The notes beneath the pieces were generated by a model. That model searched no databases, was not told where the DNA came from, and saw nothing but the letters and a program-made list of their open reading frames with translations. Shown one piece after another: positions 12,924-41,995 of a stretch of 64,000 nt of DNA. Source of the stretch: Epithemia pelagica (lineage: Eukaryota > Protista > Bacillariophyta); assembly GCA_946965045.2 (NCBI GenBank), contig OX337231.1:1-64000 (forward strand). The letters are read 5' to 3'. The position numbers and the translations under genes were made by a program. Within the stretch, counting starts at the first letter, position 1. Every line of letters starts with the position of its first letter.

Positions 12924-12967
12924 CCCTAAGGAGAAAGTGCCTGTCCGTAGGCCTACGTAGACTCTAG

Positions 12968-13110
12968 CGTCCCACTGCAGAACAGCCCCCATCCCACTTG
13001 TCCCACTGCAGAACCGCCCTCTGTCCCACTGCAGAAGTGCCCTGTCCCACTGCAGAACAGCCTGCTGTCCCACTGCAGAACAGCCCACTAGAACAGCCCT
13101 ATTCTAGTCA
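12968..13110 (+). repeat. Imperfect tandem repeats with core TCCCACTGCAGAA (alpha terminus)
   Basis: About six copies of the core at roughly 21-26 bp spacing. The reverse complement occurs at about 35045-35175 and 39250-39300. Confidence 0.85.
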
Positions 13111-13327
13111 TACCTATGCCCATGCTTATTAGTTAGTCTTAGCTCGACTAGTATCATTTCCCGTCACTACAAGTGCGACTGGGTCAGATTTTTGTGTGAA
13201 ATGACCCTTCTTTGGGCCTAATATTTTTTTGTGAGACGTGATTAGATTTTTTGTGAGATGACTCTTCTATGGGCCTTTTGATGATGGTCTTTAACCCGAC
13301 ACATTGTAACTACTAACTTAATACTAT

Positions 13328-14653
13328 TTACTTGAATGCTTTCTTTGCATATGGATTCCTTGGTAGAGCTGGTCGTGCCACAGACGGTCTGGCTGCTGTG
13401 GTTGCATGAGGTGTCTGCGTCACTGTCATGCCCATCCGTTGTTCAACACTCTGACACAGAAAAGCATGAAACGAATGGCTGTCGCATGTTACTTCGGACA
13501 TGAAATCAGTCATTGCTCTGGATTGTCCATTGGTCTTCCTTGACTCATATACATCGATCATCAGCCGCTTCAATCTTCGTTGTAAAGGACATGCACTGGG
13601 ATGGTGTTGCTTGTAGCCGCGCCTGCTGAACACATCAAAGCAGTAAAAGCAGGCCTTGTTGCTCAAGACTGTTCGGAAATTGACTTGGCACTGTCCTCTC
13701 TGGTGACCTGACTGACCACAGTGGAAGCATGCTCCATAGGGCAGACAGCTTTCACCATTGCATCCTGCCTCCTTGCACACAATGCATTCTCTTGTAAGCC
13801 TTGCCAGATAGGATTCAGCCTTTTCCGCATCAATGTCTTCATTCCTGACCCTCTCCCTGACTCTGGAGTGTCCACTTTGACTTGATTGTTCAACACACCA
13901 ATCACACACACCACAGCAATCCACCTCCAATCCGAATCGTCTTGACAGACCTTGTACTCGGCATGTTCTTTCGGCCAGCCACTTTGCTATTGAACTTGAG
14001 CCAAACACCGACTCAAGGTGAGCTCTTGATTCAGATCCAGTCAGTAATCCTTTGTCTTCAAGTAGCCTCAATGTCTGGTCTTCTTGGAGATCCCTTGCCG
14101 TGTGTCCTGTGCTGTACAACAATGTGACACTCCCATCAGGCTTTCTCTGACTTGGCCGTAGGCGTCCCACAGCTTGGACGATGTTCATTAGACTGTATAT
14201 CATGCCGCATACAATCACATGTCGACAATTGTGATTCTCATTACCACATAGTGCACATGTTGTTGAGACCAAGATTCGGATGTCCCCAGATCTCCACTGC
14301 TGGGCAACTGCTTCTTGTCTACTTGAAGGCTCATCCGATGACAGAGCTTCAACAGAAAGGTTGGTTGATTGCTTGAGGCACTGTGCAATGTCGGTACACT
14401 GCTGTTTAGTCGCCACAATCACATGTACACAGGTTGATGACTCTTTGGTTACTTTGCCTTTGGTGCAGATCACTGTGTCATGGACTAGTTGTGATGATTG
14501 GACTGTCTCAATTCGGAAACCCTTAGGGAAGATTCCCAATAGAGTTCTCCCCGTAATCAATCGATCGAGACGAAGGCCCAAGTATTCATAAAGACTCTCT
14601 ACCAGAGGCCCGGGAAGAGTTCCAGAGAGTGTGGTGAGGGGCACCCCAAATTG
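13328..14653 (-). pseudogene. 3' fragment of subfamily C YR-RecQ gene (helicase motifs III-VI, Zn domains)
   Basis: Nearly identical to the C-terminal half of ORF 31959-34814. The N-terminal residues of the listed ORF (to 14728) come from the adjacent beta terminus. Confidence 0.85.
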
Positions 14654-17600
14654 CCCTAAGGATATTTGCCTTTTTTGGGTGTCTTTAGTACTAGAGACCG
14701 TAGGATTTGAACGTGTGCATATGAGCACAAGGGGCTATAGTATCTGTGCATATGAGCAATGCTATATATGCCTTTTGTTGCAAAAGAGCACTGCCCCTTG
14801 TGCAGATGAGCACAGAATGTCTATGCCCCGCTCAAGTCTAATTTCTAAGCACTCATATTCAATATGAGTCCTGAATTTCATTGATTACTAACCATTACCG
14901 CACTCTTAGTTGTTCCCCCGTTCTTTTGGCGCGAAAAGCTTGCCTGCGTGCCCCTTCGCGCCAAACATTTTCACCTGAAAACCTCAATAGGCCCAACATC
15001 TTCACCTGAAAACCTCAATTGGCCCAACAAAAGGTCATTGTTGTTTCATGAATTATGACTCTTGCAAAGAAGCCCATCCTTGCTTTTGCTTGAGAGTCGG
15101 CTGGTTATGTCTCTTCCTCTGTTCCATGCACACGAGGAAACCAGCAATGGCTACCAACAATGGGCCTGGAACGCCATCTCCATCCCGGAGACGGCCTGTG
15201 AAGAAGATCCGTTCCGATCAGGGCATTGGCTTGTCATGTTTAGATGCTACAATTGTGACACCCTTTGGTATGGGATGCGGCATATGCAAGAAATCATTCG
15301 GAGAAAGTCTTTGGTCCATGCAGCGGCATCTAAATCAACATGGAGTCTGTGTCTCAGCAACTGACAACCGACTCCTTGTTGCAAGAAAACAGTCCCTTGA
15401 GCAAATTTTGCAAGAAGACCCTCATACCGCAAAAAACTTCTTCACGGGGAGGTCTGTTCTTGGATATTCTTGCAGGTGTCTTGTTGGCTGGACAAGACTC
15501 AGCAATGTTTTGCGTCATCTCTCCTCACCTAACTCTTGTGGAGCCATTGGGCCTGAGAGGGAACAATTGCAGGTCACTTCTTGTGGGAGGCTGGTATCTA
15601 TGACTGCTGTCAGTATGAAATATTCCCAAGAGGATCCAATCTTGAAAACAAAGAGAGCGGTCACCCAAACTTTCCATATGGTATCTGAGGAGATGGTTGA
15701 TTGTTTTGTTCCTTTGTTTCATCCATTGGCTCAGGAGGAACACTACTCTTCCAAGCCAGATGGAGCAACCTTTCAAGAACGGATGGAAAATTTGCTTTCT
15801 CTGACAACCACTAGCGGCAAAGATGAAGTCAACGAACCCATACTCAAGTTTTTCTATGATTTTGGAGAGAAGTGGTTGTTGCATGGCGCTCCAATTCATG
15901 TGAAAATGGTCCCAGCAAATTTTCGGTCGAAGCTTTTGGTATTTGATGGTACAAGGGAAAGTGGGTCACATGCTGGAGCAAATACGACCTACACATTCAC
16001 CAAGTTTCCAAACCGACTTGTTCCAGAGCTCAAGAAATTGTTGTGCTTCATCCACAAGCAGCAGCCATCCATTATGAAGAGAGAATGTGACTTACAGTCA
16101 TTACTTGTTGATCTGTGTCTCGAGACACCTGACTCTGTCAGGCACCATACTATGCTCATGACTTATGCGGTTGGCCGGACTTTGCAGCATAAGGACACCG
16201 CAGGGTCATTGTCCGTACTGGGCCCATCACGTATCGCAACAATGTATTCCGCTCTGCTCACCATTCTAAGGGCGAGTATATGTTCCTTGATCTACAAAAT
16301 GGACAAAGATTATTCTCAACAGGCCTTGACTCTAGTAAAACGGGCACAGGAATCCATAACAATCAATTTCTTGGCAAGTTCCATTCGACGCATGCGCGAA
16401 AAAGAAGCACTTATGCCATCTTCCCGGAAAGTGTCCATTCGAACCACAAAAGATATATTGGTTGACAACTTCCTTTTTAAATTTGATATTTGGACGAATG
16501 TTGTACCATGTATTGAAGAAAAGTGTATTTCATCTTTCAGAACTCTTCTGGTTGGTGACCAATGGACTGATTTCCTCAACCTAAATTTGCACTTGTACGT
16601 CAATTTGGCTCCATCTTCTGGATTGGTGTCTCTTCAGGTCGAGAAAGAATCTTCTATCATAACATCTGAAGTGATTCAAGTGCACCATGCCTTCAATGCA
16701 ACATCTGTTGATATTCTGGTATCATTCTTGGAACTTGCATTCCACGGAACAGGGTTGGGCTCCATGCGATATGCAGAAATTGAAAGGTGTCTGTTTAGTA
16801 GCATTCGTTGGCATGGCCAACAATGCTACTATTACAGTCACACCGAGAAAGTATACACTGCACTCAACAACAAACCTGGAAAGCTTGTTGAACACAAGCT
16901 ACCCAAGTCACTTGGACGCATATTTTTGGTCTTCAGAGTTGTATGTCAACACCTTCAGTCACAGCTGAAGCATGACTTGCGGAGACTTGTACCAGTGAGA
17001 AATAACAGGGTACACGAGATGACCGATGCTGTGGCAACAATCTTTGGCTTCGAAAACCGACCGGATTGCACACAAGTAAGGCACTTGTGGACATCAATCT
17101 CTAATATTCTTTTCCCGGAGTTTGATGAAATGTCGATCCAGAATCAGTACACAACCAAGACTGTGGCTGAACAGTCAGGTCACAGCCTCATAACACATCG
17201 TGACCATTATGGGTCAAGCAATGTAGCTGCAAAAGAAGACTTGTTCGAGACATATCATAAAGCACTGGGTGAAAAGTCTGTTGGGAAAGAATCAGTGACC
17301 ATGAAACGAGACTTGACGGATGGGGAGATATTGAGGACATTGCACAAACTCTTTGGGCCTAGTGCCACATACACGTGTTCTGAACAACACGCCATGTTGG
17401 CTTTTGCATCGAGAGAAAGCACATGTCATGGACACTTTGGTTTACCATGTGGAGGTGGCAAGTCACTATCATGGTTAGTCCCGGTGGTAGGAGCCAAGCT
17501 ACATCACTTGGCTCCCAAGACCTATATGGTAGTCGTGCCCTACAAATTTTTATCTGGTTACCATGAAGAACAAGTATCACGCAACTTGCCATCAGGTGTG

Positions 17601-17980
17601 GAAGTGTCTTCCATGACAGTTTCAGGCAATCAAGTTACGGCAGACCGACTGCCTGATGGTCTCCATGACTTCAAAATGTTGCCAGACATTGTTTTCTTCA
17701 GTCTCGAGGCCATATGGATGTTGGAGAAATATCATTCCTCTACTATAGAAGAGTGGGTGGAGAAGTCAGCTTTGGCCAAAATCATAATTGATGAGGTTCA
17801 CACAATTTACTCGGAGCTTTCCTTTCGGTCCAAATTTGATTGCCTTCCACGTCTTGTTCGCTACGGAGTGCCCGTCATGACCTTAAGTGGGTCCCTCCCA
17901 CGGTTTTCATTGCCAAGTCTTATGAGATACATGTCAATGACTCAAAGACAAGATCTCAAAGATATGACAATCGGATATGC
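14654..17980 (+). mobile_element. YR-RecQ telomeric element unit, beta terminus (subfamily A), ended by telomere addition
   Basis: Starts CCCTAAGGATATTTGCC, the same terminus as at 28852 and 38101. Confidence 0.85.
15147..17980 (+). pseudogene. Subfamily A YR-RecQ gene, open reading frame truncated after helicase motif III by telomeric repeats
   Basis: ATG of MATNNGPGTPSP at 15147. GTGLGSMRYAEI, CTQVRHLW and EQSGHSLITHRDHYG are YR motifs; LPCGGGKS, IIIDEVH and TLSGSL are helicase motifs. The frame then runs into RVRVRV from TTAGGG. Confidence 0.85.
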
Positions 17981-18507
17981 TAGGGTTAGGGTTAGGGTTA
18001 GGGTTAGGGTTAGGGTTAGGGTTAGGGTTAGGGTTAGGGTTAGGGTTAGGGTTAGGGTTAGGGTTAGGGTTAGGGTTAGGGTTAGGGTTAGGGTTAGGGT
18101 TAGGGTTAGGGTTAGGGTTAGGGTTAGGGTTAGGGTTAGGGTTAGGGTTAGGGTTAGGGTTAGGGTTAGGGTTAGGGTTAGGGTTAGGGTTAGGGTTAGG
18201 GTTAGGGTTAGGGTTAGGGTTAGGGTTAGGGTTAGGGTTAGGGTTAGGGTTAGGGTTAGGGTTAGGGTTAGGGTTAGGGTTAGGGTTAGGGTTAGGGTTA
18301 GGGTTAGGGTTAGGGTTAGGGTTAGGGTTAGGGTTAGGGTTAGGGTTAGGGTTAGGGTTAGGGTTAGGGTTAGGGTTAGGGTTAGGGTTAGGGTTAGGGT
18401 TAGGGTTAGGGTTAGGGTTAGGGTTAGGGTTAGGGTTAGGGTTAGGGTTAGGGTTAGGGTTAGGGTTAGGGTTAGGGTTAGGGTTAGGGTTAGGGTTAGG
18501 GTTAGGG
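17981..18507 (+). repeat. Telomeric (TTAGGG)n array
   Basis: Perfect hexamer array up to the gap. Confidence 0.99.
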
Positions 18508-18707
18508 NNNNNNNNNNNNNNNNNNNNNNNNNNNNNNNNNNNNNNNNNNNNNNNNNNNNNNNNNNNNNNNNNNNNNNNNNNNNNNNNNNNNNNNNNNNNN
18601 NNNNNNNNNNNNNNNNNNNNNNNNNNNNNNNNNNNNNNNNNNNNNNNNNNNNNNNNNNNNNNNNNNNNNNNNNNNNNNNNNNNNNNNNNNNNNNNNNNNN
18701 NNNNNNN
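18508..18707. other. 200-N assembly gap joining two telomere arrays
   Basis: Run of exactly 200 N. Confidence 0.99.
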
Positions 18708-19209
18708 ACCCTAACCCTAACCCTAACCCTAACCCTAACCCTAACCCTAACCCTAACCCTAACCCTAACCCTAACCCTAACCCTAACCCTAACCCTAACC
18801 CTAACCCTAACCCTAACCCTAACCCTAACCCTAACCCTAACCCTAACCCTAACCCTAACCCTAACCCTAACCCTAACCCTAACCCTAACCCTAACCCTAA
18901 CCCTAACCCTAACCCTAACCCTAACCCTAACCCTAACCCTAACCCTAACCCTAACCCTAACCCTAACCCTAACCCTAACCCTAACCCTAACCCTAACCCT
19001 AACCCTAACCCTAACCCTAACCCTAACCCTAACCCTAACCCTAACCCTAACCCTAACCCTAACCCTAACCCTAACCCTAACCCTAACCCTAACCCTAACC
19101 CTAACCCTAACCCTAACCCTAACCCTAACCCTAACCCTAACCCTAACCCTAACCCTAACCCTAACCCTAACCCTAACCCTAACCCTAACCCTAACCCTAA
19201 CCCTAACCC
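18708..19209 (-). repeat. Telomeric array, (CCCTAA)n on the + strand
   Basis: Perfect hexamer array. Confidence 0.99.
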
Positions 19210-21900
19210 ATGCGCATCATGTCGCATATTGACATCTCACTCAAATTCACACTCAAAACACAAGTCCACAATATCCACAACACTATACACCAAGTTCGCA
19301 CTGCACGAAACACACCTGGCCACTTGGTGAACAAAAATAGCAAAACATCAATAGATAAACCATTCAAATACCTTCAAGACACATCACTTGCGCATCATGT
19401 CGAATATTGACATCTCACTCAAATTCACACTCAAAACACAAGTCCACAATATCCACAACACTATACACCAAGTTTGCACTGCACGAAACACACCTGGCCA
19501 CTTGGTGAACAAAAATCGCAAAACATCAATAGATAAACCATTCAAATACCTTCAAGACACATCACTTGCGCATCATGTCGAATATTGACATCTCACTCAA
19601 ATTCACACTCAAAACACAAGTCCACAATATCCACAACACTATACACCAAGTTCGCACTGCACGAAACACACCTGGCCACTTGGTGAACAAAAATCGTAAA
19701 ACATCAATAGATAGACCATTCTAATACCTTCAAGACACATCACTTGTGAATCATGTCGCATATTGACGTCTCACTAAAATTCACACTCAAATCACAAGTC
19801 CTCAATATCCACAACACTATACTCCAAGTTCGCACTGCACGAAACACACCTTCCACTAACCCGAATACTCGCATCGCAACGAATGGTATTATGTAAACTT
19901 ATACTTTAGATTTTGCAAGGAAAGCCATGAATGTGCTTTTGCTTGTGTAGCATGTCGCATATTGACATCTCACTCAAATTCACACTCAAAACACAAGTCC
20001 ACAATATCCACAACACTATACACCAAGTTCGCACTGCACGAAACACACCTGGCCACTTGGTGAACAAAAATAGCAAAACATCAATAGATAAACCATTCAA
20101 ATACCTTCAAGACACATCACTTGCGCATCATGTCGAATATTGACATCTCACTCAAATTCACACTCAAAACACAAGTCCACAATATCCACAACACTATACA
20201 CCAAGTTTGCACTGCACGAAACACACCTGGCCACTTGGTGAACAAAAATCGCAAAACATCAATAGATAAACCATTCTAATATCTTCAAGACACATCCCAT
20301 GCGCATCATGTCGCATATTGACATCTCACTCAAATTCACACTCAAAACACAAGTCCACAATATCCACAACACTATACACCAAGTTCGCACTGCACGAAAC
20401 ACACCTGGCCACTTGGTGAACAAAAATCGTAAAACATCAATAGATAGACCATTCTAATACCTTCAAGACACATCACTTGTGAATCATGTCGCATATTGAC
20501 GTCTCACTAAAATTCACACTCAAATCACAAGTCCTCAATATCCACAACACTATACTCCAAGTTCGCACTGCACGAAACACACCTTCCACTAACCCGAATA
20601 CTCGCATCGCAACGAATGGTATTATGTAAACTTATACTTTAGATTTTGCAAGGAAAGCCATGAATGTGCTTTTGCTTGTGTAGCATGTCGCATATTGACA
20701 TCTCACTCAAATTCACACTCAAAACACAAGTCCACAATATCCACAACACTATACACCAAGTTCGCACTGCACGAAACACACCTGGCCACTTGGTGAACAA
20801 AAATAGCAAAACATCAATAGATAAACCATTCAAATACCTTCAAGACACATCACTTGCGCATCATGTCGAATATTGACATCTCACTCAAATTCACACTCAA
20901 AACACAAGTCCACAATATCCACAACACTATACACCAAGTTTGCACTGCACGAAACACACCTGGCCACTTGGTGAACAAAAATCGCAAAACATCAATAGAT
21001 AAACCATTCAAATACCTTCAAGACACATCACTTGCGCATCATGTCGAATATTGACATCTCACTCAAATTCACACTCAAAACACAAGTCCACAATATCCAC
21101 AACACTATACACCAAGTTTGCACTGCACGAAACACAAGTCCACAATATCCACAACATGATACATCAAGTTCGCACTGCACGAAACACACCTGGCCACTTG
21201 GTGAACAAAAATCGCAAAACATCAATAGATAAACCATTCTAATATCTTCAAGACACATCACTTGCAAATCATGTCGCATATTGACAACTCACTCAAATTC
21301 ACTCTCAAAACACAAGTCCACAATATCCACAACACTATACACCAAGTTTGCACTGCACGAAACACACCTGGCCACTTGGTGAACAAAAATCGCAAAACAT
21401 CAATAGATAAACCATTCAAATATCTTCAAGACACATCACTTGCGAATCATGTCGCATATTGACATCTCACTAAAATTCACTCTCAAAACACAAGTCCACA
21501 ATATCCACAACATTATACACCAAGTTTGCACTGCACGAAACACACCTGGCCACTTGGTGAACAAAAATCGCAAAACATCAATAGATAAACCATTCTAATA
21601 TCTTCAAGACACATCCCATGCGCATCATGTCGCATATTGACATCTCACTCAAATTCACACTCAAAACACAAGTCCACAATATCCACAACACTATACACCA
21701 AGTTCGCACTGCACGAAACACACCTGGCCACTTGGTGAACAAAAATCGTAAAACATCAATAGATAGACCATTCTAATACCTTCAAGACACATCACTTGTG
21801 AATCATGTCGCATATTGACGTCTCACTAAAATTCACACTCAAATCACAAGTCCTCAATATCCACAACACTATACTCCAAGTTCGCACTGCACGAAACACA
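19210..21900. repeat. 178-bp subtelomeric satellite with higher-order duplications
   Basis: Unit starts at 19210, 19388, 19566 and onward. It is interrupted by copies of the last ~50 nt of ORF B plus its 3' flank at about 19856-19950 and 20589-20683. Confidence 0.95.
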
Positions 21901-21950
21901 CCTTCCACTAACCCGAATACTCGCATCGCAACGAATGGTATTATGTAAAC

Positions 21951-31800: not shown

Positions 31801-31955
31801 TGTGGTCGAAATCGACCTTTTTGTGGTCGCACTAAAATTTCGCACGCAACAATACAGTGATTCAAAATTGACCTTTTTGTGGTCGCGCATGTGATTCTAC
31901 AGAATGAGCTTAGTGCGCACGACAAAAAGGTCGATTTCTAGCAAAACCCTTAGGG
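28853..31955 (-). mobile_element. YR-RecQ unit, delta terminus, subfamily F gene (31623 to 28853, defective)
   Basis: Terminus CCCTAAGGGTTTTGC at 31955 with CGACC-N6-GGTCG repeats. ORF has GADRFSEV, VVRQFWTS, SKHSQQTAMSNY and QPCGSGKT but lacks helicase motif II. Predicted intron 30417-30491. Confidence 0.8.
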
Positions 31956-34900
31956 TCTATGGAAAAAGGCAGGCATCTTATAGAAGAAGTGCAAAAATGT
32001 CCTGTATTGCACGTTCTGGCACCAATCATTCGGAGAATGAGAGAACTTACCAAACAACTTCCCAAGCAGAACAAAGTCACTGTGAACTCAACACGGGACA
32101 TCATTGTGCGATCCCACATGTTCCGCTATGACATCTGGTCACGTTTGATTGGAACCATTGCTATCAAATGCGATCAAATTTTCACAACACTTTTCGATGG
32201 AGAGACTTGGTCGATTTTCACACGATTATCACAATACTTGGTTGTATTGGAGGACGGGAATGGGTCCTTCAATTTCTCCACTGAAATGGATGGACAAGAG
32301 TTGAAGTCCAGTGAACTTCGACTAAAAGATCAACTAGAGAATGTGACAATCGAACACTACATGAAAGAGCTTGTCGGCCTCATGGACATGTCTTTCCATG
32401 GAACTGGAGGTGGTGCGATGAGGTACGAAGAACTTAAAAGGATGACAAACAAACACTGCAAGTGGCACAATAGCACAATCTACTATGTGGCGACCACTAT
32501 CAAACGCTTCAATCACAAACAACGTCAAACAACGATAGAAAGGAAACTCCCTGAGAAATTGGCTCGATTCTATTTGCTGTATGACTTTCTCTCCCGACAG
32601 ACCATTGGGCCCAATGAGATGTCCCCCCAATTTATGCTGGGGACAAATCCAGAATCAATGCAAGTGACTGTGCAACAAATCTTCGGACTGCAGACTCTTC
32701 CCGAGTGTCTAGATATTCGACACTTGTGGACATCCATTTCGAACATTGTCTTTTCGAAGAACTCACTTTCCGGCAAACTCGCGGTCGACGAAAATATTGC
32801 ACGACTCTCGGGTCATTCGGCCCAAACCCACAATGACTTCTATGCATCAAAGGAAGAAGGATGCCAAGAGACTATATACGAGATATACCACAATGCAATT
32901 GGTCAAGGGGAGCTCAACGAGACCTACCATCTGGCCCCACTGTCCATCCCAGACCTTGACTATGCCTTGAAAATTTTGTACGGCGGGACTGCTCTGTATC
33001 GAAGTACCGAGCAACAACAGATGGTTTATACGACAATCAATCAAAAGCATGAAAATTATCATGTCTCCCTTGAATGTGGAGGAGGCAAGAGCCTAGCATG
33101 GACTCTACCTGTTTTTGCAAAGACTTATTTTGGGCGCCACATGGCGGGACTACACATTGTCATCCTACCCTACAAGTTTCTTGCAGCCTTTCATGTGTCC
33201 CAGCTACAACAGCTTTTCGATAAGAAGGTTGTTGCCAAGATTGCCTTTCTACAAAATTCAATGGTCAGCCAGAATTCCTATCCAGATTTTCTTGACGATG
33301 TGGGAGGAAATTTTCCAGATGTGATGTTCTGTACGGTGGACTCGATCGGGAGTCTTTTCAAATTTCACCATCTCTTTGTGCATGAACTGTCATCAAAACA
33401 CAAAAATGCCCGATTTTATCTCGATGAAGTGCATACACTATTCAGTGAACAGTTCAGAATAGCATATGACAACATACAGAACATCGGGCAATTTGGGGTG
33501 CCCCTCACCACACTCTCTGGGACTCTTCCCGGGCCTCTGGTAGAAAGTCTTGATGAATACTTGGGCCTTCGTCTCGATCGATTGATTACGGGGAGAACTC
33601 TATTGGGAATCTTCCCTAAGGGTTTCCGAATTGAGACAGTCCAATCATCACAACTAGTCCATGACACAGTGATCTGCACCAAAGGCAAAGTAACCACAGA
33701 GTCATCAACCTGTGTACATGTGATTGTGGCGACTAAACAGCAGTGTACCGACATTGCACAGTGCCTCAAGCAATCAACCAACCTTTCTGTTGAAGCTCTG
33801 TCATCGGATGAGCCTTCAAGTAGACAAGAAGCAGTTGCCCAGCAGTGGAGATCTGGGGACATCCGAATCTTGGTCTCAACAACATGTGCACTATGTGGTA
33901 ATGAGAATCACAATTGTCGACATGTGATTGTATGCGGCATGATATACAGTCTAATGAACATCGTCCAAGCTGTGGGAGGCCTACGGCCAAGTCAGAGAAA
34001 GCCTGATGGGAGTGTCACATTGTTGTATAGCACAGGACACACGGCAAGGGATCTCCAAGAAGACCAGACATTGAGGCTACTTGAAGACAAAGGATTACTG
34101 ACTGGATCTGAATCAAGAGCTCACCTTGAGTCGGTGTTTGGCTCAAGTTCAATAGCAATGTGGCTGGCCGAAAGAACATGCCGAGTACAAGGTCTGTCAA
34201 GACGATTCGGATTGGAGGTGGATTGCTGTGGTGTGTGTGATTGGTGTGTTGAACAATCAAGTCAAAGTGGACACTCCAGAGTCAGGGAGAGGGTCAGGAA
34301 TGAAGACATTGATGCGGAAAAGGCTGAATCCTATCTGGCAAGGCTTACAAGAGAATGCATTGTGTGCAAGGAGGCAGGATGCAATGGTGAAAGCTGTCTG
34401 CCCTATGGAGCATGCTTCAACTGTGGTCAGCCAGGTCACCAGAGAGGACAGTGCCGAGTCGATTTCCAAACAGTCTTGAGCAACAAGGCCTGCTTTTACT
34501 GCTTTGATGTGTTCAGCAGGCGCGGCTACAAGCAACACCATCCCAGTGCATGTCCTTTACAACGAAGATTGAAGCGGCTGATGATCGATGTATATGAGTC
34601 AAGGAAGACAAATGGACAATCCAGAGCAATGACTGATTTCATGTCCGAAGTAACATGTGACAGCCATTCGTTTCATGCTTTTCTGTGTCAGAGTGTTGAA
34701 CAACGGATGGGCATGACAGTGACACAGACACCTCATGCAACCACAGCAGCCAGACCATCTGTGGCACGACCAGCTCTACCAAGGAATCCATATGCAAAGA
34801 AAGCATTCAAGTAGATAGTATTAAGTTAGTAGTTACAATGTGTCGGGTTAAAGACCATCATCAAAAGGCCCATAGAAGAGTCATCTCACAAAAAATCTAA

Positions 34901-35218
34901 TCACGTCTCACAAAAAAATATTAGGCCCAAAGAAGGGTCATTTCACACAAAAATCTGACCCAGTCGCACTTGTAGTGACGGGAACTGAAACTAGTCGAGC
35001 TAGGACTAACTAATAAGCATGGGCATAGGTATGACTAGACTAGGGCTGTTCTAGTGGGCTGTTCTGCAGTGGGACAGCAGGCTGTTCTGCAGTGGGACAG
35101 GGCACTTCTGCAGTGGGACAGAGGGCGGTTCTGCAGTGGGACAAGTGGGATGGGGGCTATTCTGCAGTGGGACGCTAAAGTCTACGTAGGCCTACGGACA
35201 GGCACTTTCTCCTTAGGG
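31956..35218 (+). mobile_element. YR-RecQ unit, alpha terminus, subfamily C gene lacking its N-terminus (ORF 31959-34814)
   Basis: ORF has GGAMRYEEL, LDIRHLWTS, RLSGHSAQTHNDFY, LECGGGKS, YLDEVH, TLSGT and Zn domains. The alpha terminus lies downstream of the stop; the 5' part is cut at the 31955 junction. Confidence 0.85.
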
Positions 35219-38101
35219 CACGACTACCATATAGGTCTTGGGAGCCAAGTGATGTAGCTTGGCTCCTACCACCGGGACTAACCATGATAGTGACTTGCCA
35301 CCTCCACATGGTAATCCAAAGTGTCCATGACATGTGCTTTCTCTCGATGCAAAAGCCAACATGGCGTGTTGTTCAGAACACGTGTATGTGGCACTAGGCC
35401 CAAAGAGTTTGTGCAATGTCCTCAATATCTCCCCATCCGTCAAGTCTCGTTTCATGGTCACTGATTCTTTCCCAACAGACTTTTCACCCAGTGCTTTATG
35501 ATATGTCTCGAACAAGTCTTCTTTTGCAGCTACATTGCTTGACCCATAATGGTCACGATGTGTTATGAGGCTGTGACCTGACTGTTCAGCCACAGTCTTG
35601 GTTGTGTACTGATTCTGGATCGACATTTCATCAAACTCCGGGAAAAGAATATTAGAGATTGATCTCCACAAGTGCCTTACTTGGGTGCAATCCGGTCGGT
35701 TTTCGAAGCCAAAGATTGTTGCCACAGCATCGGTCATCTCGTGTACCCTGTTATTTCTCACTGGTACAAGTCTCCGCAAGTCATGCTTCAGCTGTGACTG
35801 AAGGTGTTGACATACAACTCTGAAGACCAAAAATATGCGTCCAAGTGACTTGGGTAGCTTGTGTTCAACAAGCTTTCCAGGTTTGTTGTTGAGTGCAGTG
35901 TATACTTTCTCGGTGTGACTGTAATAGTAGCATTGTTGGCCATGCCAACGAATGCTACTAAACAGACACCTTTCAATTTCTGCATATCGCATGGAGCCCA
36001 ACCCTGTTCCGTGGAATGCAAGTTCCAAGAATGATACCAGAATATCAACAGATGTTGCATTGAAGGCATGGTGCACTTGAATCACTTCAGATGTTATGAT
36101 AGAAGATTCTTTCTCGACCTGAAGAGACACCAATCCAGAAGATGGAGCCAAATTGACGTACAAGTGCAAATTTAGGTTGAGGAAATCAGTCCATTGGTCA
36201 CCAACCAGAAGAGTTCTGAAAGATGAAATACACTCTTCTTCAATACATGGTACAACATTCGTCCAAATATCAAATTTAAAAAGGAAGTTGTCAACCAATA
36301 TATCTTTTGTGGTTCGAATGGACACTTTCCGGGAAGATGGCATAAGTGCTTCTTTTTCGCGCATGCGTCGAATGGAACTTGCCAAGAAATTGATTGTTAT
36401 GGATTCCTGTGCCCGTTTTACTAGAGTCAAGGCCTGTTGAGAATAATCTTTGTCCATTTTGTAGATCAAGGAACATATACTCGCCCTTAGAATGGTGAGC
36501 AGAGCGGAATACATTGTTGCGATACGTGATGGGCCCAGTACGGACAATGACCCTGCGGTGTCCTTATGCCGCAAAGTCCGGCCAACCGCATAAGTCATGA
36601 GCATAGTATGGTGCCTGACAGAGTCAGGTGTCTCGAGACACAGATCAACAAGTAATGACTGTAAGTCACATTCTCTCTTCATAATGGATGGCTGCTGCTT
36701 GTGGATGAAGCACAACAATTTCTTGAGCTCTGGAACAAGTCGGTTTGGAAACTTGGTGAATGTGTAGGTCGTATTTGCTCCAGCATGTGACCCACTTTCC
36801 CTTGTACCATCAAATACCAAAAGCTTCGACCGAAAATTTGCTGGGACCATTTTCACATGAATTGGAGCGCCATGCAACAACCACTTCTCTCCAAAATCAT
36901 AGAAAAACTTGAGTATGGGTTCGTTGACTTCATCTTTGCCGGTAGTGGTTGTCAGAGAAAGCAAATTTTCCATCCGTTCTTGAAAGGTTGCTCCATCTGG
37001 CTTGGAAGAGTAGTGTTCCTCCTGAGCCAATGGATGAAACAAAGGAACAAAACAATCAACCATCTCCTCAGATACCATATGGAAAGTTTGGGTGACCGCT
37101 CTCTTTGTTTTCAAGATTGGATCCTCTTGGGAATATTTCATACTGACAGCAGTCATAGATACCAGCCTCCCACAAGAAGTGACCTGCAATTGTTCCCTCT
37201 CAGGCCCAATGGCTCCACAGGAGTTAGGTGAGGAGAGATGACGCATAACATTGCTGAGTCTTGTCCAACCAACAAGACACCTGCAAGAATATCCAAGAAC
37301 AGACCTCCCCGTGAAGAAGTTTTTTGCGGTATGAGGGTCTTCTTGCAAAATTTGCTAAAGGGACTGTTTTCTTGCAACAAGGAGTCGGTTGTCAGTTGCT
37401 GAGACACAGACTCCATGTTGATTTAGATGCCGCTGCATGGACCAAAGACTTTCTCCGAATGATTTCTTGCATATGCCGCATCCCATACCAAAGGGTGTCA
37501 CAATTGTAGCATCTAAACATGACAAGCCAATGCCCTGATCGGAACGGATCTTCTTCACAGGCGGTCTCCGGGATGGAGATGGCGTTCCAGGCCCATTGTT
37601 GGTAGCCATTGCTGGTTTCCTCGTGTGCATGGAACAGAGGAAGAGACATAACCAGCCGACTCTCAAGCACAAGCAAGGATGGGCCTCTTTGCAAGAGTCA
37701 TAATTCATGAAACAACAATGACCTTTTGTTGGGCCAATTGAGGTTTTCAGGTGAAGATGTTGGGCCTATTGAGGTTTTCAGGTGAAGATGTTGGGCGCGA
37801 AGGGGCACGCAGGCAAGCTTTTCGCGCCAAAAGAACGGGGGAACAACTAAGAGTGCGGTAATGGTTAGTAATCAATGAAATATAGGACTCATATTGAATA
37901 TGAGTGCTTAGAAATTAGACTTGAGCGGGGCATAGACATTCTGTGCTCATCTGCACAAGGGGCAGTGCTCTTTTGCAACAAAAGGCATATATAGCATTGC
38001 TCATATGCACAGATACTATAGCCCCTTGTGCTCATATGCACACGTTCAAATCCTACGGTCTCTAGTACTAAAGACACCCAAAAAAGGCAAATATCCTTAG
38101 G
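35219..38101 (-). mobile_element. YR-RecQ unit, beta terminus, subfamily A pseudogene (37609 to 35219, nonsense at 37355)
   Basis: Near-identical to 14654-17540. GAG>TAG change in QSLEQ. Confidence 0.85.
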
Positions 38102-39249
38102 ACACAACAGTATTCAACCCGAGAGCTAAAATGGTTCTTTTTGCCCCTATTTCTGGGTCTGTTGCATGAATTTGGCTCCAAAATGGAGTCGAGTGATGTA
38201 TGGAACTGTGGAGTAAGCAGCAAAATGGTCTTGCCAAACCACAGAGAGATTGAGATGGTTTTTCTATGTTGTTTTCCATCAGGAGAGATGCAGATTGTGG
38301 ACTAGACCGTTGGATTGGTTGAACCACAAAGTCAGATACAGTGTTGTGTTGGTGGATGTATGTGTGGAACGGAACCACCAAAGAGAATGAAGTTTGATTG
38401 GTGGATGTACGTAATGAGCGGAACCACCAGGAGTATGAGATTGGCTTGAGTGCCACTACCAGGAGTATGAAATTTGTGATCGGATATGGGAGAGCACGAG
38501 GGTCAGAGTCATGGTTTGGTTGTTCTCATGCAATTGCCTGAACAAGATCCATTTGGACTCGACCCATGTATTTGATTGTTGGCTCTGGCTATGCATTGCA
38601 TACTTCCCCATGTACTTTGTGAGTTGTTTGATCACGATGCAATGACAAAGATGGTTTATTTGGTGCTTAAGAAGGAGAACTAGAGGCACAATCACCTCGT
38701 CAGTGGACGCTGGAATCGCGAGGGGACCGAGAAATGGTCGCGGTAGTGGGCGGAATTTGGGCGATCTAGCTATCTGTCGGCGAGCCCTAGCCCCTCGCCA
38801 GTCGCTTCCCCTCGCCAGTCGCTTCTGTTGTTGGTAGATAACGTAGACACTTCTTTGTTTTGGACGATATTTCATCCAGCAACGAGGTCGTTTCTTGATT
38901 CGACAAAAATTCCTAACTTTTGCTTTTTTCGTGTACAAGAAGTATTCTTCTACAGACTTGTCGCTTTCCCGCCAAAAAAGCAAAAATCTAGCGCTAGTAG
39001 CTTTATGAGCCAATGAACAAGTACGGCCATATTGAATATGACCACTTGAGAAGTAAATAGAGGGCATAGGTAAATTCCTGGCTCAATCGCAACGGGGGTT
39101 ATGAAAAATTGCAGCTCATCTGCAAAATGAGCATAACAAATTTGCTCATATGCAACAAAGCACTGTAGGATATTCTGCTCATATGCACACGTTCAAATCC
39201 TACGGTCTCTAGTACTAAAACATGCCAAAAAAGGGGAAAATACTTAGGG
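38102..39249 (-). mobile_element. beta' terminus unit (matches 26930-27284) followed by unrelated, probably Copia-derived sequence
   Basis: 38895-39249 mirrors the unit at 26930-27284. 38717-38745 resembles the PPT/LTR start of the Copia at 63794-63822. Confidence 0.65.
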
Positions 39250-39341
39250 TGGTTCTGCAGTGGGACAAGTGGGATGGGGGCTGTTCTGCAGTGGGACGCT
39301 AGAGTCTACGTAGGCCTATGGACAGGCACTTTCTCCTTAGG
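39250..39341 (-). mobile_element. alpha-terminus stub (~92 bp)
   Basis: Only the terminus and two repeats remain before the next junction. Confidence 0.8.
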
Positions 39342-41161
39342 CGAGAGGTCATTAATTGTCAAGTCATTTCCATTGAGTTGAGTCCCATTAGATTCAATGG
39401 AATAATTGAACCAACCACAGTCATCCTGTATCACGTTAATTGGGCATCCATTGAGGTCAGTGAAAGCCATCCAGTCCAAGTGAGAAAAGATTTCTGAGCA
39501 GACACTGTCGCAGTGGACTTTCAATACCGACAGAAGGCTGGACCAAAGACCATATGCAAACTTATGACTCTGCACCACTATGTCTCCTGTGGAGGTCACA
39601 GTGACCTTACACTCCGTTGGTTGTTGACTTTGTAGTTCTCGTAGTTGCCTAATCATAGGACAGAGAACATGCACAGACACGCACTGTCAAACCTGCTTCA
39701 AAAGAGCTGCTCCTCTTTGCAGCACCTCTGAATCAAAATGGTAGATTGAAGAGCACACAGCTCCTCGAAGAAGACACAAGACATCAGAACACATACTTGC
39801 AGAGTTGCCTGGTCGGACAAAGGTTAATGACCCTTCATTTTCACGACACATCCGAGACAAACAGTATTTCACAACCAAGCAATCTTGGGGCAATTTCTGG
39901 ATTGGCTCCATGAAAAGACCCAGCAAGATTCTTGGGATGGCCCGAACAAGGTCATTCCTGTCACAGTCACGAAGGCTTCTCTGGTGTTGAGGAGAAATAT
40001 TCTGTTGGAAAATGAAGCACAGCAGCTTCTTGAGCTCCCGACCGATCACATCGTCATTGTGTCGAAATGTGAATGTGTTGTTTTGATTGACCTCATCAAT
40101 CTCCATTCCATCCAAAACAACAAGAGCAGCACGGAAATTTCCAGGAGTCCGTTGAACATGTAGTCGGACATGATCTTTAATCCAAACCTCTCCTCCTTGC
40201 AGGATCTCAAGGAGAACTGAGTCTGTAGTGTCTGTGCTTGCCCAGTCAACCATTTCAACCAGCCGGCTGGTTAAATTCTCACGGTACTGGTAGGCCAGAT
40301 CGTAAAACATGCTGGTGTACGTACGCACACCCATAGAACCTGCAAGCATTGGCTGTAGAATTGCAGCTGTCTGATCACTGTTCCATGGGGTATCACTTGT
40401 TTCCACTCCAGGGATCAACCTGCAACAGACTGTTGTCACACAAGAAGTTCTTGTTGCACTTGAACCATTGCATACTCCTCCACTATGGCGACAGTGATCT
40501 GCAAGTGCTCTTCGTGTCTTGAAAATTTCTCCACAAACGCAGCAATGACCCATCACAGTCTCCAGGATACTTGATGACCTGGTTTCTGTAGTGTTTAATT
40601 GTTGCATGTGGCTCTTACACTGTGCCAACATGTCTTTTAAGGAAACCCTGGTCACCCACTGCCGGTGTTTCTTCAAATGCCTTTGCAAGGACGATGTCGA
40701 AAAACCAATTGGAACTTTACAAACCAAACAATAAATATCAAAATGAGACACCCTGATGCCATGGTGATTGTCAAAGGCATACCCAGTCAATGGGTCAAAC
40801 AAGGGGGAAGAATCTGACATGGTCAATGGAGGAACTGTGCAAGGTACCAATGAGAGCGAGACGAGAGATAGATAGATGGGGTGGAGTGAGGTCATTGGGC
40901 CCATAGAAATTCATATGGGCCAAATGACCTTGGCAGTCCCAAGGGAAAAGGCAATAATAATTACTATAGGTTTTGATTGTACTTTGTGGGATGAGGGGCT
41001 GTGCGAAGGTGGGATGAGGGGCTGTGCGAAGGTGGGATGAGGGGCTGTGCGAAGGCGGGATGAGGGCTGTGCGAAGGCGGGATGAAGGAGAATAGTAGGA
41101 GGGGAGGGTGGGAAGCCAGGATCTACATAGCTCTACGTAGAGACCTAGTTTATCCTTAGGG
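39342..41161 (-). mobile_element. YR-RecQ unit, gamma terminus, 5' part of subfamily D gene (40904 to 39342, in-frame TGA at 39687)
   Basis: Terminus CCCTAAGGATAAACTAGG with GAAGGTGGGATGAGGGGCTGTGC repeats at about 40985-41085. ORF has CLVC..QRHLKKH and aligns by eye to subfamily C (VHVLCPMIRQLREL vs LHVLAPIIRRMREL). Confidence 0.8.
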
Positions 41162-41852
41162 ACAATTTCTGGATTGGCTCCATGAAAAGACCCAGCAAGA
41201 TTCTTGGGATGGCCCGAACAAGGTCATTCCTGTCACAGTCACGAAGGCTTCTCTGGTGTTGAGGAGAAATATTCTGTTGGAAAATGAAGCACAGCAGCTT
41301 CTTGAGCTCCCAACCGATCACATCGTCATTGTGTTGAAATGTGAATGTGTTGTTTTGATTGACCTCATCAATCTCCATTCCATCCAAAACAACAAGAGCA
41401 GCACGGAAATTTCCAGGAGTCCGTTGAACATGTAGTCGGACATGATCTTTAATCCAAACCTCTCCTCCTTGCAGGATGTCAAGGAGAACTGAGTCTGTAG
41501 TGTCTGCGCTTGCCCAGTCAACCATTTCAACCAGCCGGCTGGTTAAATTCTCACGGTACTGGTAGGCCAGACCGTGAAACATGCTGGTGTACGTACGCAC
41601 ACCCATAGAACCTGCAAGCATTGGCTGTAGAATTGCAGCTGTCTGATCACTGTTCCATGGGGTATCACTTGTTTCCACTCCAGGGATCAACCTGCGAAGG
41701 TGGGATGAGGGGCTGTGCGAAGGTGGGATGAGGGGCTGTGCGAAGGTGGGATGAGGGCTGTGCGAAGGCGGGATGAAGGGGAATAGTAGGAGGGGAGGGT
41801 GGGAAGCCAGGATCTACATAGCTCTACGTAGAGACCTAGTTTATTCTTAGGG
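41162..41852 (-). mobile_element. Internally deleted gamma unit
   Basis: Terminus and repeats are joined at about 41693 directly to an internal piece of the D gene (duplicate of 39895-40425). Confidence 0.8.
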
Positions 41853-41910
41853 GAGGGTGGGAAGCCAGGATCTACATAGCTCTACGTAGAGACCTAGTTT
41901 ATCCTTAGGG
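41853..41910 (-). mobile_element. gamma-terminus stub (58 bp), innermost unit joined to host DNA
   Basis: ATCCTTAGGG|CAAATTGT. The paralogous host region at about 56014 reads TTGGGCAAATTGT. Confidence 0.8.
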
Positions 41911-41995
41911 CAAATTGTAGGGTGGATCGCCTCGAGGAAGAGTGCAACAAGAGACTATATTCTCACAGTTGGCACGTTTTGAAGGAGACTCAGTT

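Follow-up and report, generated by a model that had tools for sequence, protein, structure and literature searches.

The window analysed here is a stretch of 64,000 nt from Epithemia pelagica, in which a run of 200 N (18508..18707) is flanked by telomere arrays placed head to head. Since (TTAGGG)n precedes this run and (CCCTAA)n follows it, the N mark a place where the separate ends of two chromosomes or contigs were put together, not an internal gap, so that neither continuity nor a reading frame exists across 18508..18707. The ORFs 15048..19232, 17977..18714, and 18502..19227, which run through the gap, are artefacts whose frames are open in the telomere repeats. The left chain (12924-17985) consists of two units with termini at 12924 and 14654, and the right chain (19207-41910) consists of 11 units with termini at 41910, 41852, 41161, ~39342, 39249, ~38102, 35218, 31955, 28852, 27284, and 26523. 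Read telomere-ward, a unit begins at (C)CC/TAAG (the slash marks the joint), continues with a family-specific segment of 100-400 nt, and stops distally at the next unit or the telomere; all long ORFs of the chain are fragments of one protein family. Both ends are stacked, one-sidedly truncated copies of a single type of DNA element, with the following features (coordinates, strand, description):

11989..12923, + strand: possible older J-like unit (uncertain), terminus CCCTAAGCGTA, without recombinase gene
12924..14653, + strand: unit A of the left arm, terminus CCC/TAAGGAGAAAGTG, cut off at the start of B
14654..17985, + strand: unit B of the left arm, terminus CCC/TAAGGATATTTGCC
17986..18507, + strand: telomere of the left sequence, (TTAGGG)87
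18508..18707, no strand: run of 200 N with telomere arrays on both sides
18709..19206, - strand: telomere of the right sequence, (CCCTAA)83 on the + strand
19207..21905, - strand: 178-bp satellite, ~15 copies, telomere-ward strand G/T-rich, distal part of unit D
21951..25874, - strand: intact gene of unit D, 1307 aa
25875..26523, - strand: 5' leader and fixed terminus of unit D, ...ATATCCTTA/GGG on the + strand
26524..27284, - strand: short unit G, terminus CCC/TAAGTATTTTCC, internal deletion, start of the gene only (aa 1-84)
27285..28852, - strand: unit B, first 1.57 kb only
28853..31955, - strand: unit C, terminus CCC/TAAGGGTTTTGCTA
31956..35218, - strand: unit A, longest copy, terminus at 35218, cut at ~aa 383 by unit C
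35219..38102, - strand: unit B, 2.9 kb, junction trinucleotide TCC, not CCC
38103..39249, - strand: second copy of unit G, diverging from the other G copy after 354 nt
39250..39342, - strand: unit A, first 92 nt only, junction trinucleotide GCC
39343..41161, - strand: unit F, terminus CCC/TAAGGATAAACTAGG, 23-nt repeats
41162..41910, - strand: two further F units, 41162-41852 (internal deletion) and 41853-41910 (58 nt)

The 13 units proposed in a preliminary description of this DNA were recovered, two on the left and 11 on the right, and the inventory was corrected in that the satellite at 19207-21905 belongs to unit D. The left chain may start earlier, at ~11200-11989; a CCCTAAGCG terminus sits at 11989, proximal to 12924, a similar one (CCCTAAGCGCA) opens the distal DNA of locus L032 at 14596, and 11211-11870 is found again within the chains of loci L004 and L033. 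The left-arm unit A carries ~400 nt of 5'UTR-like sequence with 23-nt repeats, followed by the inverted 3' part of the gene, and the ORF 13328-14728 on the minus strand matched Helicase_C (Pfam, E 1.5e-11). This unit is 99% identical to 33486-35218 on the right arm, and homology also links its terminus with those of F and C. The gene of left-arm B runs from 15048 towards the telomere and ends at ~aa 980 inside the helicase. Where the untruncated B of L004 reads GGATATGCAGAGAATG, the window B reads GGATATGC/TAGGGTTAGGG; the gene is cut there by de novo telomere addition.

On the right arm, the telomere at 19207 is joined inside a satellite repeat, in a phase different from that in L007. Behind the D gene, this 178-bp satellite is also found in L007 and at two places in L008, and CCC is absent from its telomere-ward strand over 10.3 kb; the unit D terminus is present at nine places among the end loci. 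The B unit at 27285..28852 is 98% identical to 36531-38101 and to 14654-16225 of the left arm, with its break at CCCATC of native B. The gene fragment of unit C is a 959-aa ORF (28744-31623) corresponding to family aa 24-885, and C copies truncated at other points were found in L004, L009, L032, and L033. In the longest unit A, the gene is inverted (a 951-aa ORF at 31959-34814 of the + strand, with DEAD, Helicase_C, and zf-CCHC), and the unit meets B at CCCTA of the native B sequence; this B (35219..38102) shares 99% identity with 14652-17542 of the left arm. Since A is followed by B on the left arm and B by A on the right, at 99% identity, the stacking order of the units varies. The unit F at 39343..41161 retains a gene fragment corresponding to aa 37-550 (ORF 39687-40904). 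The termini at 41910 and 41852, previously read as two units, were both recovered, but they could alternatively reflect a 58-nt tandem duplication. The innermost F unit is joined to a member of a host gene family, itself cut at CCC; an empty-site comparison gave CAATTTGCCC/TAAGGATAAAC in the window versus CAATTTGCCC/ATGAGCACC in L009 and in the window paralogue near 56016. Ordinary microhomology deletions are also present inside units.

The sole gene of the element encodes a protein of ~1300-1400 aa with zinc fingers, a tyrosine-recombinase domain, a RecQ-like helicase, and a Cys-rich tail. In the 1307-aa D protein, which has this Cys-rich tail, the zinc fingers lie at ~aa 60-131, the catalytic domain of the tyrosine recombinase at ~aa 494-725 (R535, K562, R634, H668, Y677), and the RecQ-like helicase at ~aa 735-1180. 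Only seven columns (G, R, K, R, H, Y, G) are invariant in 42 diverse homologues, among them the catalytic residues of tyrosine recombinases, at which the protein is most strongly conserved; the canonical His ahead of the second Arg is not conserved. The recombinase domain was undetected by Pfam, PHROGs, and PDB sequence searches, and the Pfam models Phage_integrase, DUF3504, and DUF3435 gave no score even at E up to 10. Its AF2 model (pLDDT 86.9) was submitted to Foldseek, a check suggested in the preliminary description, and the top 50 PDB matches were nearly all tyrosine recombinases (including XerA, Cre, XerH, Tre, XerD, IntI, and a staphylococcal integrase), plus a few type IB topoisomerases, with a probability of 0.98-1.00 for the best 17 and a modest best E-value of 1.6e-3. 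Both enzymes named in that description were thereby confirmed, the tyrosine recombinase by the invariant R, K, R, H, and Y and by the structural matches, and the RecQ helicase by the family profile, whose best PDB match was RECQ5 (E 6e-8, spanning the helicase and the zinc subdomain) and which also matched E. coli RecQ. In family A, the gene is inverted behind a normal terminus, and families H and J are without the recombinase gene; some units are non-autonomous.

All 36 typed termini at eight end loci of Epithemia pelagica are directed telomere-ward and none is reversed, in a sample from one species that was located via D-family proteins and in which internal copies of other families could be hidden. 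Each of the 36 typed units starts at the same base of its own family. The fixed proximal end, the variable distal end, and the polarity first described for the window hold at six further end loci of the same species, as do the loss of distal target and the lack of TSD and of RT or DDE genes, with no RT or DDE Pfam match found in the chain. Element DNA starts with 5'-TAAG, which is immediately preceded by CCC in 32 of the 36 termini, and the break lies at CCC in 22 of the 23 junctions with a known native target (one D/B junction is counted twice, in L004 and L032), two of which are empty-site comparisons in host DNA. As CCC is expected about once in 64 by chance, chance is excluded as the source of these two counts. 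At the ACC and CAC junctions, the trinucleotide comes from the target, indicating that the rule reflects a cleavage or target preference and not simple microhomology with the incoming end. The family A terminus is joined to three different contexts, and these normal joints despite an inverted gene indicate that the element requires in cis no more than its terminus. Exceptions are two joints of unit H (CGTCTAAGGAGG...), both at sites other than CCC, and joints without a canonical terminus at L008 8470 and L004 4553.

The preliminary description had also stated that the target sequence beyond each joint is missing, and indeed the distal sequence of the interrupted unit resumes at none of the 12 junctions tested. 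Telomeres were added de novo inside units at three different points. A block of D (4.4 kb) joined to B is common to L004 and L032 (99.2% over 5186 nt) with different proximal neighbours, which shows that the donor can be another chromosome end and can comprise several units. Copies in L009, L032, L033, and L034 are separated from contig ends by ~14-26 kb and have other DNA on their distal side, so "strictly terminal" is true only at arrival, if at all. Neither the reciprocal product expected of an end swap nor a free form of the element was observed.

In metagenome relatives with 26-30% identity, contig starts carry the same (C)CCTAAG terminus and the units are stacked too; metagenome contigs extending beyond the terminus have unique upstream sequence without telomere repeats. 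Contig L001 begins exactly at the fixed end, and in L023 a new terminus directly follows a gene cut at aa 682. In L034, which belongs to another species, a truncated element is immediately followed by a fossil telomere tract oriented as predicted. The protein family contains 524 clusters, none of them named, and no published description of such an element was found in a literature search.

We regard it as probable that these units represent a DNA-level mobile element of chromosome ends, moving by end replacement, in which the recombinase joins the CCC of the recipient to TAAG; the element seems to spread by replacing the chromosome tip. To our knowledge, tip replacement as a mode of movement is so far known only for retrotransposons. 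The recombinase would cut the telomere-ward strand after CCC in a recipient subtelomere and would also cut a donor copy at its CCC/TAAG boundary; then, the recipient CCC would be joined to the donor TAAG. Because homology is lacking beyond the cut, the second strand exchange is unlikely to proceed in the normal way; the branched intermediate may be finished by copying the donor out to the telomere, probably with the help of the fused helicase, or the two ends may be swapped. The recipient would lose all DNA distal to CCC and gain the distal DNA of the donor, namely further units, if any, plus the telomere. Eroded or broken ends would later be healed by telomerase inside a unit, and new units would land on CCC sites of the outermost units, giving stacks whose units are complete proximally and cut distally. 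The encoded enzyme is tied to the joints by association, and we infer that it makes them; the earlier proposal of a single recombinase-made joint is strengthened by the target rule, in which a break after CCC meets an element start of TAAG.

A free linear episome capped by telomerase, whose body and distal telomere are swapped onto the chromosome at CCC, is an unlikely alternative. Its bottom strand would end in ...CCTTA-3' and be extended by telomerase with GGGTTAGGG, and the displaced chromosome tip would be lost as an acentric fragment. Such an episome would explain why the junction always recreates the outward telomeric hexamer CCCTAA, would need no dicentric or uncapped product, and would account for most junctions being unique, and the G/T-rich satellite distal to D would be a good telomere-seeding substrate. 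However, the block shared by L004 and L032 shows multi-unit chromosome ends acting as donors, the metagenome contigs past the terminus are unique upstream and free of telomere repeats, no junction has more than one CCCTAA, and no free form was observed. Subtelomeres of many organisms are mosaics made by host repair, and telomere-linked RecQ-like helicase families are known (PMC4522978, PMC7473861, PMC1635262); the units might accordingly be an ordinary subtelomeric gene family of the TLH/Y' kind with an idle recombinase-like domain, shuffled by break-induced replication, ectopic recombination, and microhomology-mediated end joining. A few non-canonical joints and the microhomology deletions within units agree with such shuffling, which nevertheless predicts variable donor starts, whereas all 36 units start at the same base per family in one orientation. 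The CCC preference persists where the incoming DNA gives no matching bases, the recombinase catalytic residues are the most conserved of the protein among the 42 diverse homologues, and the terminus is conserved at 26-30% protein identity, and we consider host shuffling rather improbable.

An encoded tyrosine recombinase, the absence of RT, and a joint with a short stretch of target identity, which Cryptons also show (PMC9977147, PMC3212892), would also suit a Crypton-like cut-and-paste or circle-integrating transposon, whose internal, self-preferring, nested insertions mimic stacks. After such an insertion, the remainder of the interrupted unit should follow the insert, but it is missing in 12 of 12 cases; no second fixed end was found, the A terminus is no right end but an ordinary proximal one whose gene is inverted, and every copy points to the nearest contig end or telomere, making this origin quite improbable. 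It is more improbable still that the units were added by reverse transcription of their own RNA, as in a telomere-specific retroelement of the HeT-A/TART or Athena/Terminon style. Head-to-tail telomeric arrays in which one end is fixed and the other variable characterise such elements, and the fixed end is the start of the 5' leader, exactly where L001 begins. But RT was not found in the chain or in the relatives, poly(A), telomere-repeat spacers between units, and ribozymes (nothing in Rfam) are lacking, and in D units the gene is followed distally by kilobases of satellite; end-primed reverse transcription places the RNA 3' end proximally, whereas here the 5' end of the gene is proximal. Subtelomeric repeats are hard to assemble, yet we give almost no credence to mis-joined repeats at contig ends, as the same exact junction rule was found in eight loci on different contigs, in short-read metagenome contigs of other organisms, and in a second species, and chimeric joins would miss the precise CCC/TAAG.

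Among known systems, the eukaryotic Cryptons (CryptonF/S/A/I) resemble the end-replacing element proposed here in having a tyrosine recombinase as the only recombination enzyme, in lacking RT, TIRs, and TSD, and in placing the joint at a very short sequence that is common to the element end and the target or is preferred there. In Chlamydomonas, a short terminal sequence recombines with a near-identical target, CACCG with CAYCG (PMC9977147), and stramenopile CryptonS has TATGG termini (PMC3212892). Unlike the present units, which have one fixed end, lack the distal target, and lie at chromosome ends in a single polarity, Cryptons are internal and two-ended, with the target intact on both sides. 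They are without the helicase that is fused to the recombinase here; CryptonF has GCR1_C, and CryptonS has a conserved C-terminal region, sometimes a C48 peptidase. Starships and Enterprise, the giant fungal elements with DUF3435, are likewise DNA elements driven by a tyrosine recombinase and carry whatever follows the recombinase end, but they insert internally, have two ends and a defined target site, greatly exceed the present element in size, and encode a DUF3435 "Captain"; no DUF3435 match was obtained here.

The TLH genes of Magnaporthe, Ustilago, S. pombe, Fusarium, and Agaricus, as well as the yeast Y' elements, are similar in being multi-copy RecQ-like helicase genes adjoining telomeres. 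Complete as well as truncated telomere-linked helicase genes occur, differing from end to end and from strain to strain (PMC1635262, PMC4522978, PMC7473861), and no domain besides the helicase core has been reported for fungal TLH (PMC7473861). Spread of the fungal genes is thought to be due to host recombination, whereas a recombinase domain is fused in here, and the base-exact proximal end and the CCC target rule also set the element apart from TLH and Y'; Y' units are separated by telomere repeats, in contrast to the absence of internal telomere tracts in this species. No sequence relatedness to fungal TLH was found by searches other than profiles against fungal proteins. Telomeric retrotransposons (HeT-A/TART/TAHRE of Drosophila, Athena/Terminons, other endonuclease-less Penelope-like elements, MoTeR, and SART/TRAS) share the head-to-tail stacks, the single polarity, and the combination of one fixed and one variably truncated end, and in effect they too form or extend the chromosome end. 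They are RNA-mediated and use RT, their 3' end lies proximally, and their joints consist of poly(A) or telomere repeats, whereas the element described here has no RT, a proximal and fixed 5' side, and CCC/TAAG joints. Finally, D copies elsewhere are 98-99% identical, with pN/pS of 0.3-0.4 in most comparisons (0.91 in one pair), and the presence of several intact 1307-aa copies at this identity and mostly low pN/pS suggests recent activity.

The two telomere arrays of the window face each other across a run of N, so the window holds two separate chromosome or contig ends in series. There is no continuity across the gap, and the ORFs called through it are open frames of the telomere repeat. The telomere-ward strand is the plus strand on the left arm and the minus strand on the right arm, and the main features are as follows.

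17986-18507, telomere of the left sequence, (TTAGGG)87
18508-18707, N run between the two telomere arrays
18709-19206, telomere of the right sequence, (CCCTAA)83
19207-21905, 178-bp satellite, distal part of the D unit
21951-25874, minus strand, intact D gene, 1307 aa
Right-arm units, in order toward the telomere: F, F, F, A (92 nt), G, B, A, C, B, G, D

The 13 units claimed in the preliminary description were all recovered, two of them (A and B) on the left arm and 11 on the right. Read toward the telomere, each block starts with (C)CC|TAAG and a family-specific leader and stops at the next block or at the telomere; the units are one-ended and range from 0.06 to 8 kb. All long ORFs of the chain were identified by tblastn as fragments of one protein family of ~1370 aa. 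Self-comparison of the window paired the left A copy (12924-14656) with a right one (35218-33486) and the left B copy (14652-17542) with a right one (38104-35214), each at 99% identity, while the telomere-ward order differs, being A then B on the left arm and B then A on the right. The 178-bp satellite is assigned to D because the D gene precedes it in the window, in L007, and twice in L008, the latter two being further end loci of this species. The chain had also been described as free of RT and DDE genes, and the domain search agreed, returning no RT or DDE match; no Rfam family, ribozymes included, was found in the chain.

Six further loci (L004, L007, L008, L009, L032, and L033) were obtained from one ENA assembly via exact-protein look-ups. 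All of them lie at most ~25 kb from a contig end, and their gene points outward, in a sample possibly biased toward ends, as it was located by the D-family and A-family proteins. The fixed, family-specific terminus and variable distal end proposed earlier were found again in the window and in all six loci. The single polarity also held, with 36 of 36 typed termini pointing telomere-ward and none reversed (eight end loci, one species). In these eight loci, the trinucleotide before TAAG is CCC in 32 of 36 cases, and GCC, TCC, ACC, and CAC occur once each. Where the pre-insertion sequence is known from another copy, the target broke at CCC in 22 of 23 junctions and at ACC in the remaining one, a count that includes one D|B junction twice (L004 and L032). 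Two empty-site comparisons in host DNA gave ...CAATTTGCCC|TAAGG vs ...CAATTTGCCC|ATGAGC and ...GTTATCGCCC|TAAGG vs ...GTTATCGCCC|ACGTTG. The trinucleotide at the ACC and CAC junctions comes from the target, indicating that element DNA starts at TAAG and that CCC is a preference of the target rather than a pairing with the incoming end; microhomology joining via a terminal GGG was ruled out on this ground. The loss of distal target described earlier was seen at all 12 junctions tested, where the interrupted DNA is not resumed distally. The CCC at +278 of family C has served as a landing site at least three times. Exceptions are unit H (CGTCTAAGGAGG..., no gene), whose two joints to C fall at points other than CCC, and two joints without the canonical terminus.

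Joining to the telomere repeats themselves was considered and rejected, since the CCCTAA at the joint is oriented opposite to expectation; no internal telomere tract was found between units in the end loci of the window species, which counts against telomere-repeat recombination. The inverted gene of family A had raised the suspicion of terminal inverted repeats or of attachment through either end. This idea was rejected because the first ~400 nt of A align with F and C over their normal proximal terminus and leader, and no inverted terminus was found in the metagenome relatives L001-L003.

Leader tandem repeats were observed in families A and F (23 nt, C-rich; 12999-13086, 35056-35143, 40986-41085, and 41693-41781) and in family B (31 nt; 14960-15029, 28478-28547, and 37727-37796), together with small palindromes located 25-40 nt from the element end (TAGTACTA; CTACGTAG). 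These repeats and palindromes could be putative protein-binding sites, and they are frequent landing sites of new units. The 178-bp satellite (window 19207-21905; L008 5718-8460 and 13966-18846) has no CCC in 10.3 kb of the telomere-ward strand, for which its composition predicts ~7. If units do land at CCC, incoming ones would be unable to displace this satellite. In L008, DNA beyond a satellite is joined non-canonically.

The simplest end is L007, which consists of host genes, one D unit, satellite, and telomere. Elsewhere, the window families recur, differently ordered and truncated at other points. A D unit (same CCC cut, 4.4 kb) and the B unit next to it are common to L004 and L032 (99.2% over 5186 nt), and the proximal neighbours of this block differ between the two loci. 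A multi-unit block has therefore moved, with the terminus of D as the joint, and both copies of it are present. Family A carries a normal terminus and a leader homologous to F and C, has its gene inverted, and is joined to three different contexts. The arrangement of these units suggests that the terminus is the only requirement in cis and that any distal DNA travels with it. Three separate attachment points of telomeres were seen, one on the left arm within the B helicase and two in the satellite that differ in phase, indicating de novo healing. Among possible products of reciprocal end swaps, only two non-canonical joints were found, both without the expected CCC signature.

Several units depart from the common form. 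Unit H (L009 13739 onward; L032 4790-6377) starts with CGTCTAAGGAGG, contains a 368-bp duplication and a ~105-bp satellite, lacks the recombinase gene, and is followed in L009 by a RING/FYVE-type gene. At L032 14596-23795, a stretch of at least 9 kb without a family gene begins with the terminus-like CCCTAAGCGCA, and a similar terminus is present at window position 11989; the 1285-aa ORF in this stretch (L032 17641-21498) has no Pfam or PDB match. A D copy at L009 8186-9478 carries ~1.2 kb extra between terminus and normal leader.

The family protein, which consists of zinc fingers, a tyrosine recombinase region, a RecQ-like helicase, and a Cys-rich tail, had been proposed as a recombinase-helicase fusion, and this identity is borne out by its catalytic residues, its modelled fold, and a profile match to RECQ5. 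Homologues of the D protein with 26-33% identity are found on metagenome and Logan contigs of ~6 kb. The catalytic order of tyrosine recombinases and type IB topoisomerases is Arg-Lys-(His)-Arg-His/Trp-Tyr, and the family alignment displays the R...K...R-H...G-H...Y pattern typical of tyrosine recombinases. In sets of 15 and of 42 homologues, R535, K562, R634, H668, and Y677 (1307-aa numbering) never vary, and only seven columns are invariant in 42 diverse catalytic regions (G39, R42, K69, R141, H175, Y184, and G204); the His three residues ahead of Arg-II is not conserved. The AF2 model of the recombinase region has pLDDT 86.9. In a Foldseek search of the PDB, tyrosine recombinases (XerA, Cre, XerH, Tre, XerD, IntI, and a staphylococcal integrase) made up nearly all of its top 50 matches, alongside a few type IB topoisomerases; the 17 strongest had probabilities of 0.98-1.00, the lowest E-value was 1.6e-3, and TM was ~0.45-0.52. 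A larger model of the N-terminal part matched the same families with weaker scores. No recombinase match was returned by Pfam for 15 family members at E up to 10 (DUF3504 and DUF3435 included) or by the PDB profile search, and PHROGs gave no integrase match. By residue conservation and predicted model, the domain has the catalytic residues and fold of tyrosine recombinases, strand cleavage through a covalent 3'-phosphotyrosine link, with strand transfer, being its putative activity.

The C-terminal half is matched by Pfam DEAD and Helicase_C. The best PDB match of the family profile is RECQ5 (E 6e-8, profile 735-1179 vs residues 13-445), with E. coli RecQ next; the SF2 core is most RecQ-like in this match, which includes the zinc-binding subdomain, and the automatic JGI name is 'superfamily II DNA helicase RecQ'. 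After motif II, the family consensus has a D-E-x-Q ... G-F-R-x-x-Y stretch, which we take to resemble the RecQ aromatic loop. No RQC winged-helix or HRDC match was found in Pfam, and in their place the C-terminus is Cys-rich, resembling CCHC knuckles. A weak piggyBat match of a 959-aa ORF (E 0.05) was discarded, the ORF being a piece of the family protein. Several intact D copies have 98-99% identity, with pN/pS of 0.3-0.4 in most comparisons and 0.91 in one pair, which suggests that the D lineage is functional and has been recently active.

Relatives are numerous. The recombinase-region profile returned 524 representatives at E up to 1e-3, including 171 at 1e-30 or better; these are 50%-identity clusters of public data, all of them without a name, pointing to an unannotated component of many protist genomes. 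Many of the best 150 of the 524 are 1300-1600 aa, in addition to shorter fragments, and sampled members come from metagenomes, ENA, and Logan only, without a curated name. A full-alignment profile search of a word-indexed database returned the self cluster only. The contig of L001 begins exactly at CCCTAAGGA; (C)CCTAAG and a conserved AT-rich motif are present near the contig starts of L010, L015, L020, and L011 (JGI); and in L023 the (C)CCTAAG terminus directly follows a gene cut at aa 682. Two further genes were identified in metagenome relatives:

L001 4531-6210, L002 5241-6284, also L003, L005, L006, and others: second gene (ORF2), core ~290 aa, downstream of the recombinase-helicase gene
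L015 6905-10516, L016 5765-9655, L020 7103-10465, all minus strand: large ORF (ORF3), 1100-1300 aa, opposite strand, downstream of ORF2

ORF2 is conserved in all metagenome relatives and has no Pfam match. Two of the three large ORFs are 34% identical and carry a weak, sub-threshold Integrase_H2C2 match; ORF3 gave no match in the PDB and, beyond that weak one in two copies, nothing in Pfam. No counterpart of either ORF was found in the window species. In L034, from another assembly and species (~30% identity), the element is cut in the second gene; a degenerate TTAGGG tract of 43 nt comes next, oriented as predicted, with 9 kb more DNA beyond it in the locus and ~25 kb to the contig end. This tract marks a buried former chromosome end. 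At L034 15343-15395, the degenerate telomere tract and one inverted repeat are followed by TATGG (...GGGTTAGGGTTA ACCCTAAC TATGG...). TATGG is the terminus of stramenopile CryptonS elements (PMC3212892), a resemblance that may be coincidence.

Several explanations of the chains were weighed. Retrotransposition would fit the stacking, which is common to these units and the telomeric retrotransposons (HeT-A/TART, Athena/Terminon, and MoTeR). In those elements, which use RT, the RNA 3' end is joined to the chromosome end; in the present element, the fixed proximal end is the gene's 5' end and RT is absent from chain and relatives, so that polarity and the absence of RT rule against reverse transcription, including via telomerase. 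Nested Crypton-like insertion would share with the present element a DNA element with a tyrosine recombinase and no reverse transcriptase, and Cryptons also have short-core logic at the joint (PMC9977147, PMC3212892). However, Cryptons are two-ended and internal, leave an intact target, often have short terminal direct repeats, and lack a helicase, whereas the present element has a single fixed end, the proximal one, and the distal part of the target is missing at 12 of 12 junctions. In Starships, the DUF3435 'Captain' recombinase occupies one end of a cargo-carrying element that is large and two-ended, unlike the present one-ended units of 0.06-8 kb without a DUF3435 match. Helitron/IS91 elements are one-ended and move by rolling circle with an HUH Rep endonuclease and an SF1 (Pif1-like) helicase; the present protein differs in having no Rep domain, an SF2 RecQ-like helicase, and an N-terminal tyrosine-recombinase fold. 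Further alternatives, each rated less likely than the mechanism below, are stacks made by host repair alone, an assembly artefact, and a free linear form capped by telomeres.

In the mechanism that fits best, the recombinase would join a CCC site in the recipient subtelomere to the TAAG end of a donor copy, and the distal DNA of the donor, with its telomere, would then take the place of the recipient tip, completed by copying with the help of the fused helicase. A second strand exchange is unlikely because the sequence past the cut is not common to the partners, and a copying step would explain a block retained by both donor and recipient; these steps and the helicase role are our inference. 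We give somewhat less than even weight to the reading that this is a separate eukaryotic mobile-element class, a self-transferring chromosome-end cassette that could be ancestral to fungal TLH and yeast Y', in which the fusion protein makes a single site-specific joint at CCC|TAAG and the rest of the donor end, telomere included, is copied onto the recipient. If so, a DNA parasite would build and turn over the subtelomeres of these organisms, and the fungal telomere-linked helicase genes and yeast Y' could be degenerate or domesticated remnants. Fungal TLH and yeast Y' likewise have a RecQ-like helicase gene family directly beside telomeres, and no domain beyond the helicase has been reported for fungal TLH (PMC7473861). 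The helicase-region search returned only metagenome proteins of the present family without a curated name.

To our knowledge, the mobile elements that build or extend chromosome ends are all retroelements, and we know of no means of autonomous spread for telomere-linked helicase gene families. The literature search found no published description of a recombinase-RecQ architecture at chromosome ends. A DNA element with a recombinase-RecQ-like fusion, a base-exact end, and tip replacement would be a third route to subtelomeres, would supply a testable mechanism for rapid end turnover, and would offer a defined pair of recombinase and site (CCC|TAAG) acting at chromosome ends. Conservatively, the novelty is tempered by the resemblance of enzyme class and short-core logic to Cryptons, and the element would merit a class of its own should both the copying step and its specificity for ends be confirmed.

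Finally, we also noted features of the DNA around the chains. Genes of Copia-type LTR retrotransposons (gag/pol, RVT_2) lie beside and beyond the chain in L033 (5220-9384 and 18807-21770), indicating that other elements insert into these subtelomeres. A piggyBac-type transposase ORF (1085 aa, 7690-10947, minus strand; DDE_Tnp_1_7, E 2.9e-43) adjoins the left chain of the window proximally and lies outside it. The right-arm chain begins within one copy of a host-like gene, cut at a CCC; several copies of this family were found with 80-98% identity (window 41908-43444 and 56016-57555; L009 5028-6610), and its 500-aa ORF at 41996-43498 has no Pfam match. The neighbouring ORF at 44515-45981 is fucosyltransferase-like (GT10). 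On the right arm outside the chain, two pairs of direct repeats are 100% identical, at 48698-48888 and 55084-55274 (191 nt) and at 57635-57756 and 63805-63926 (122 nt).
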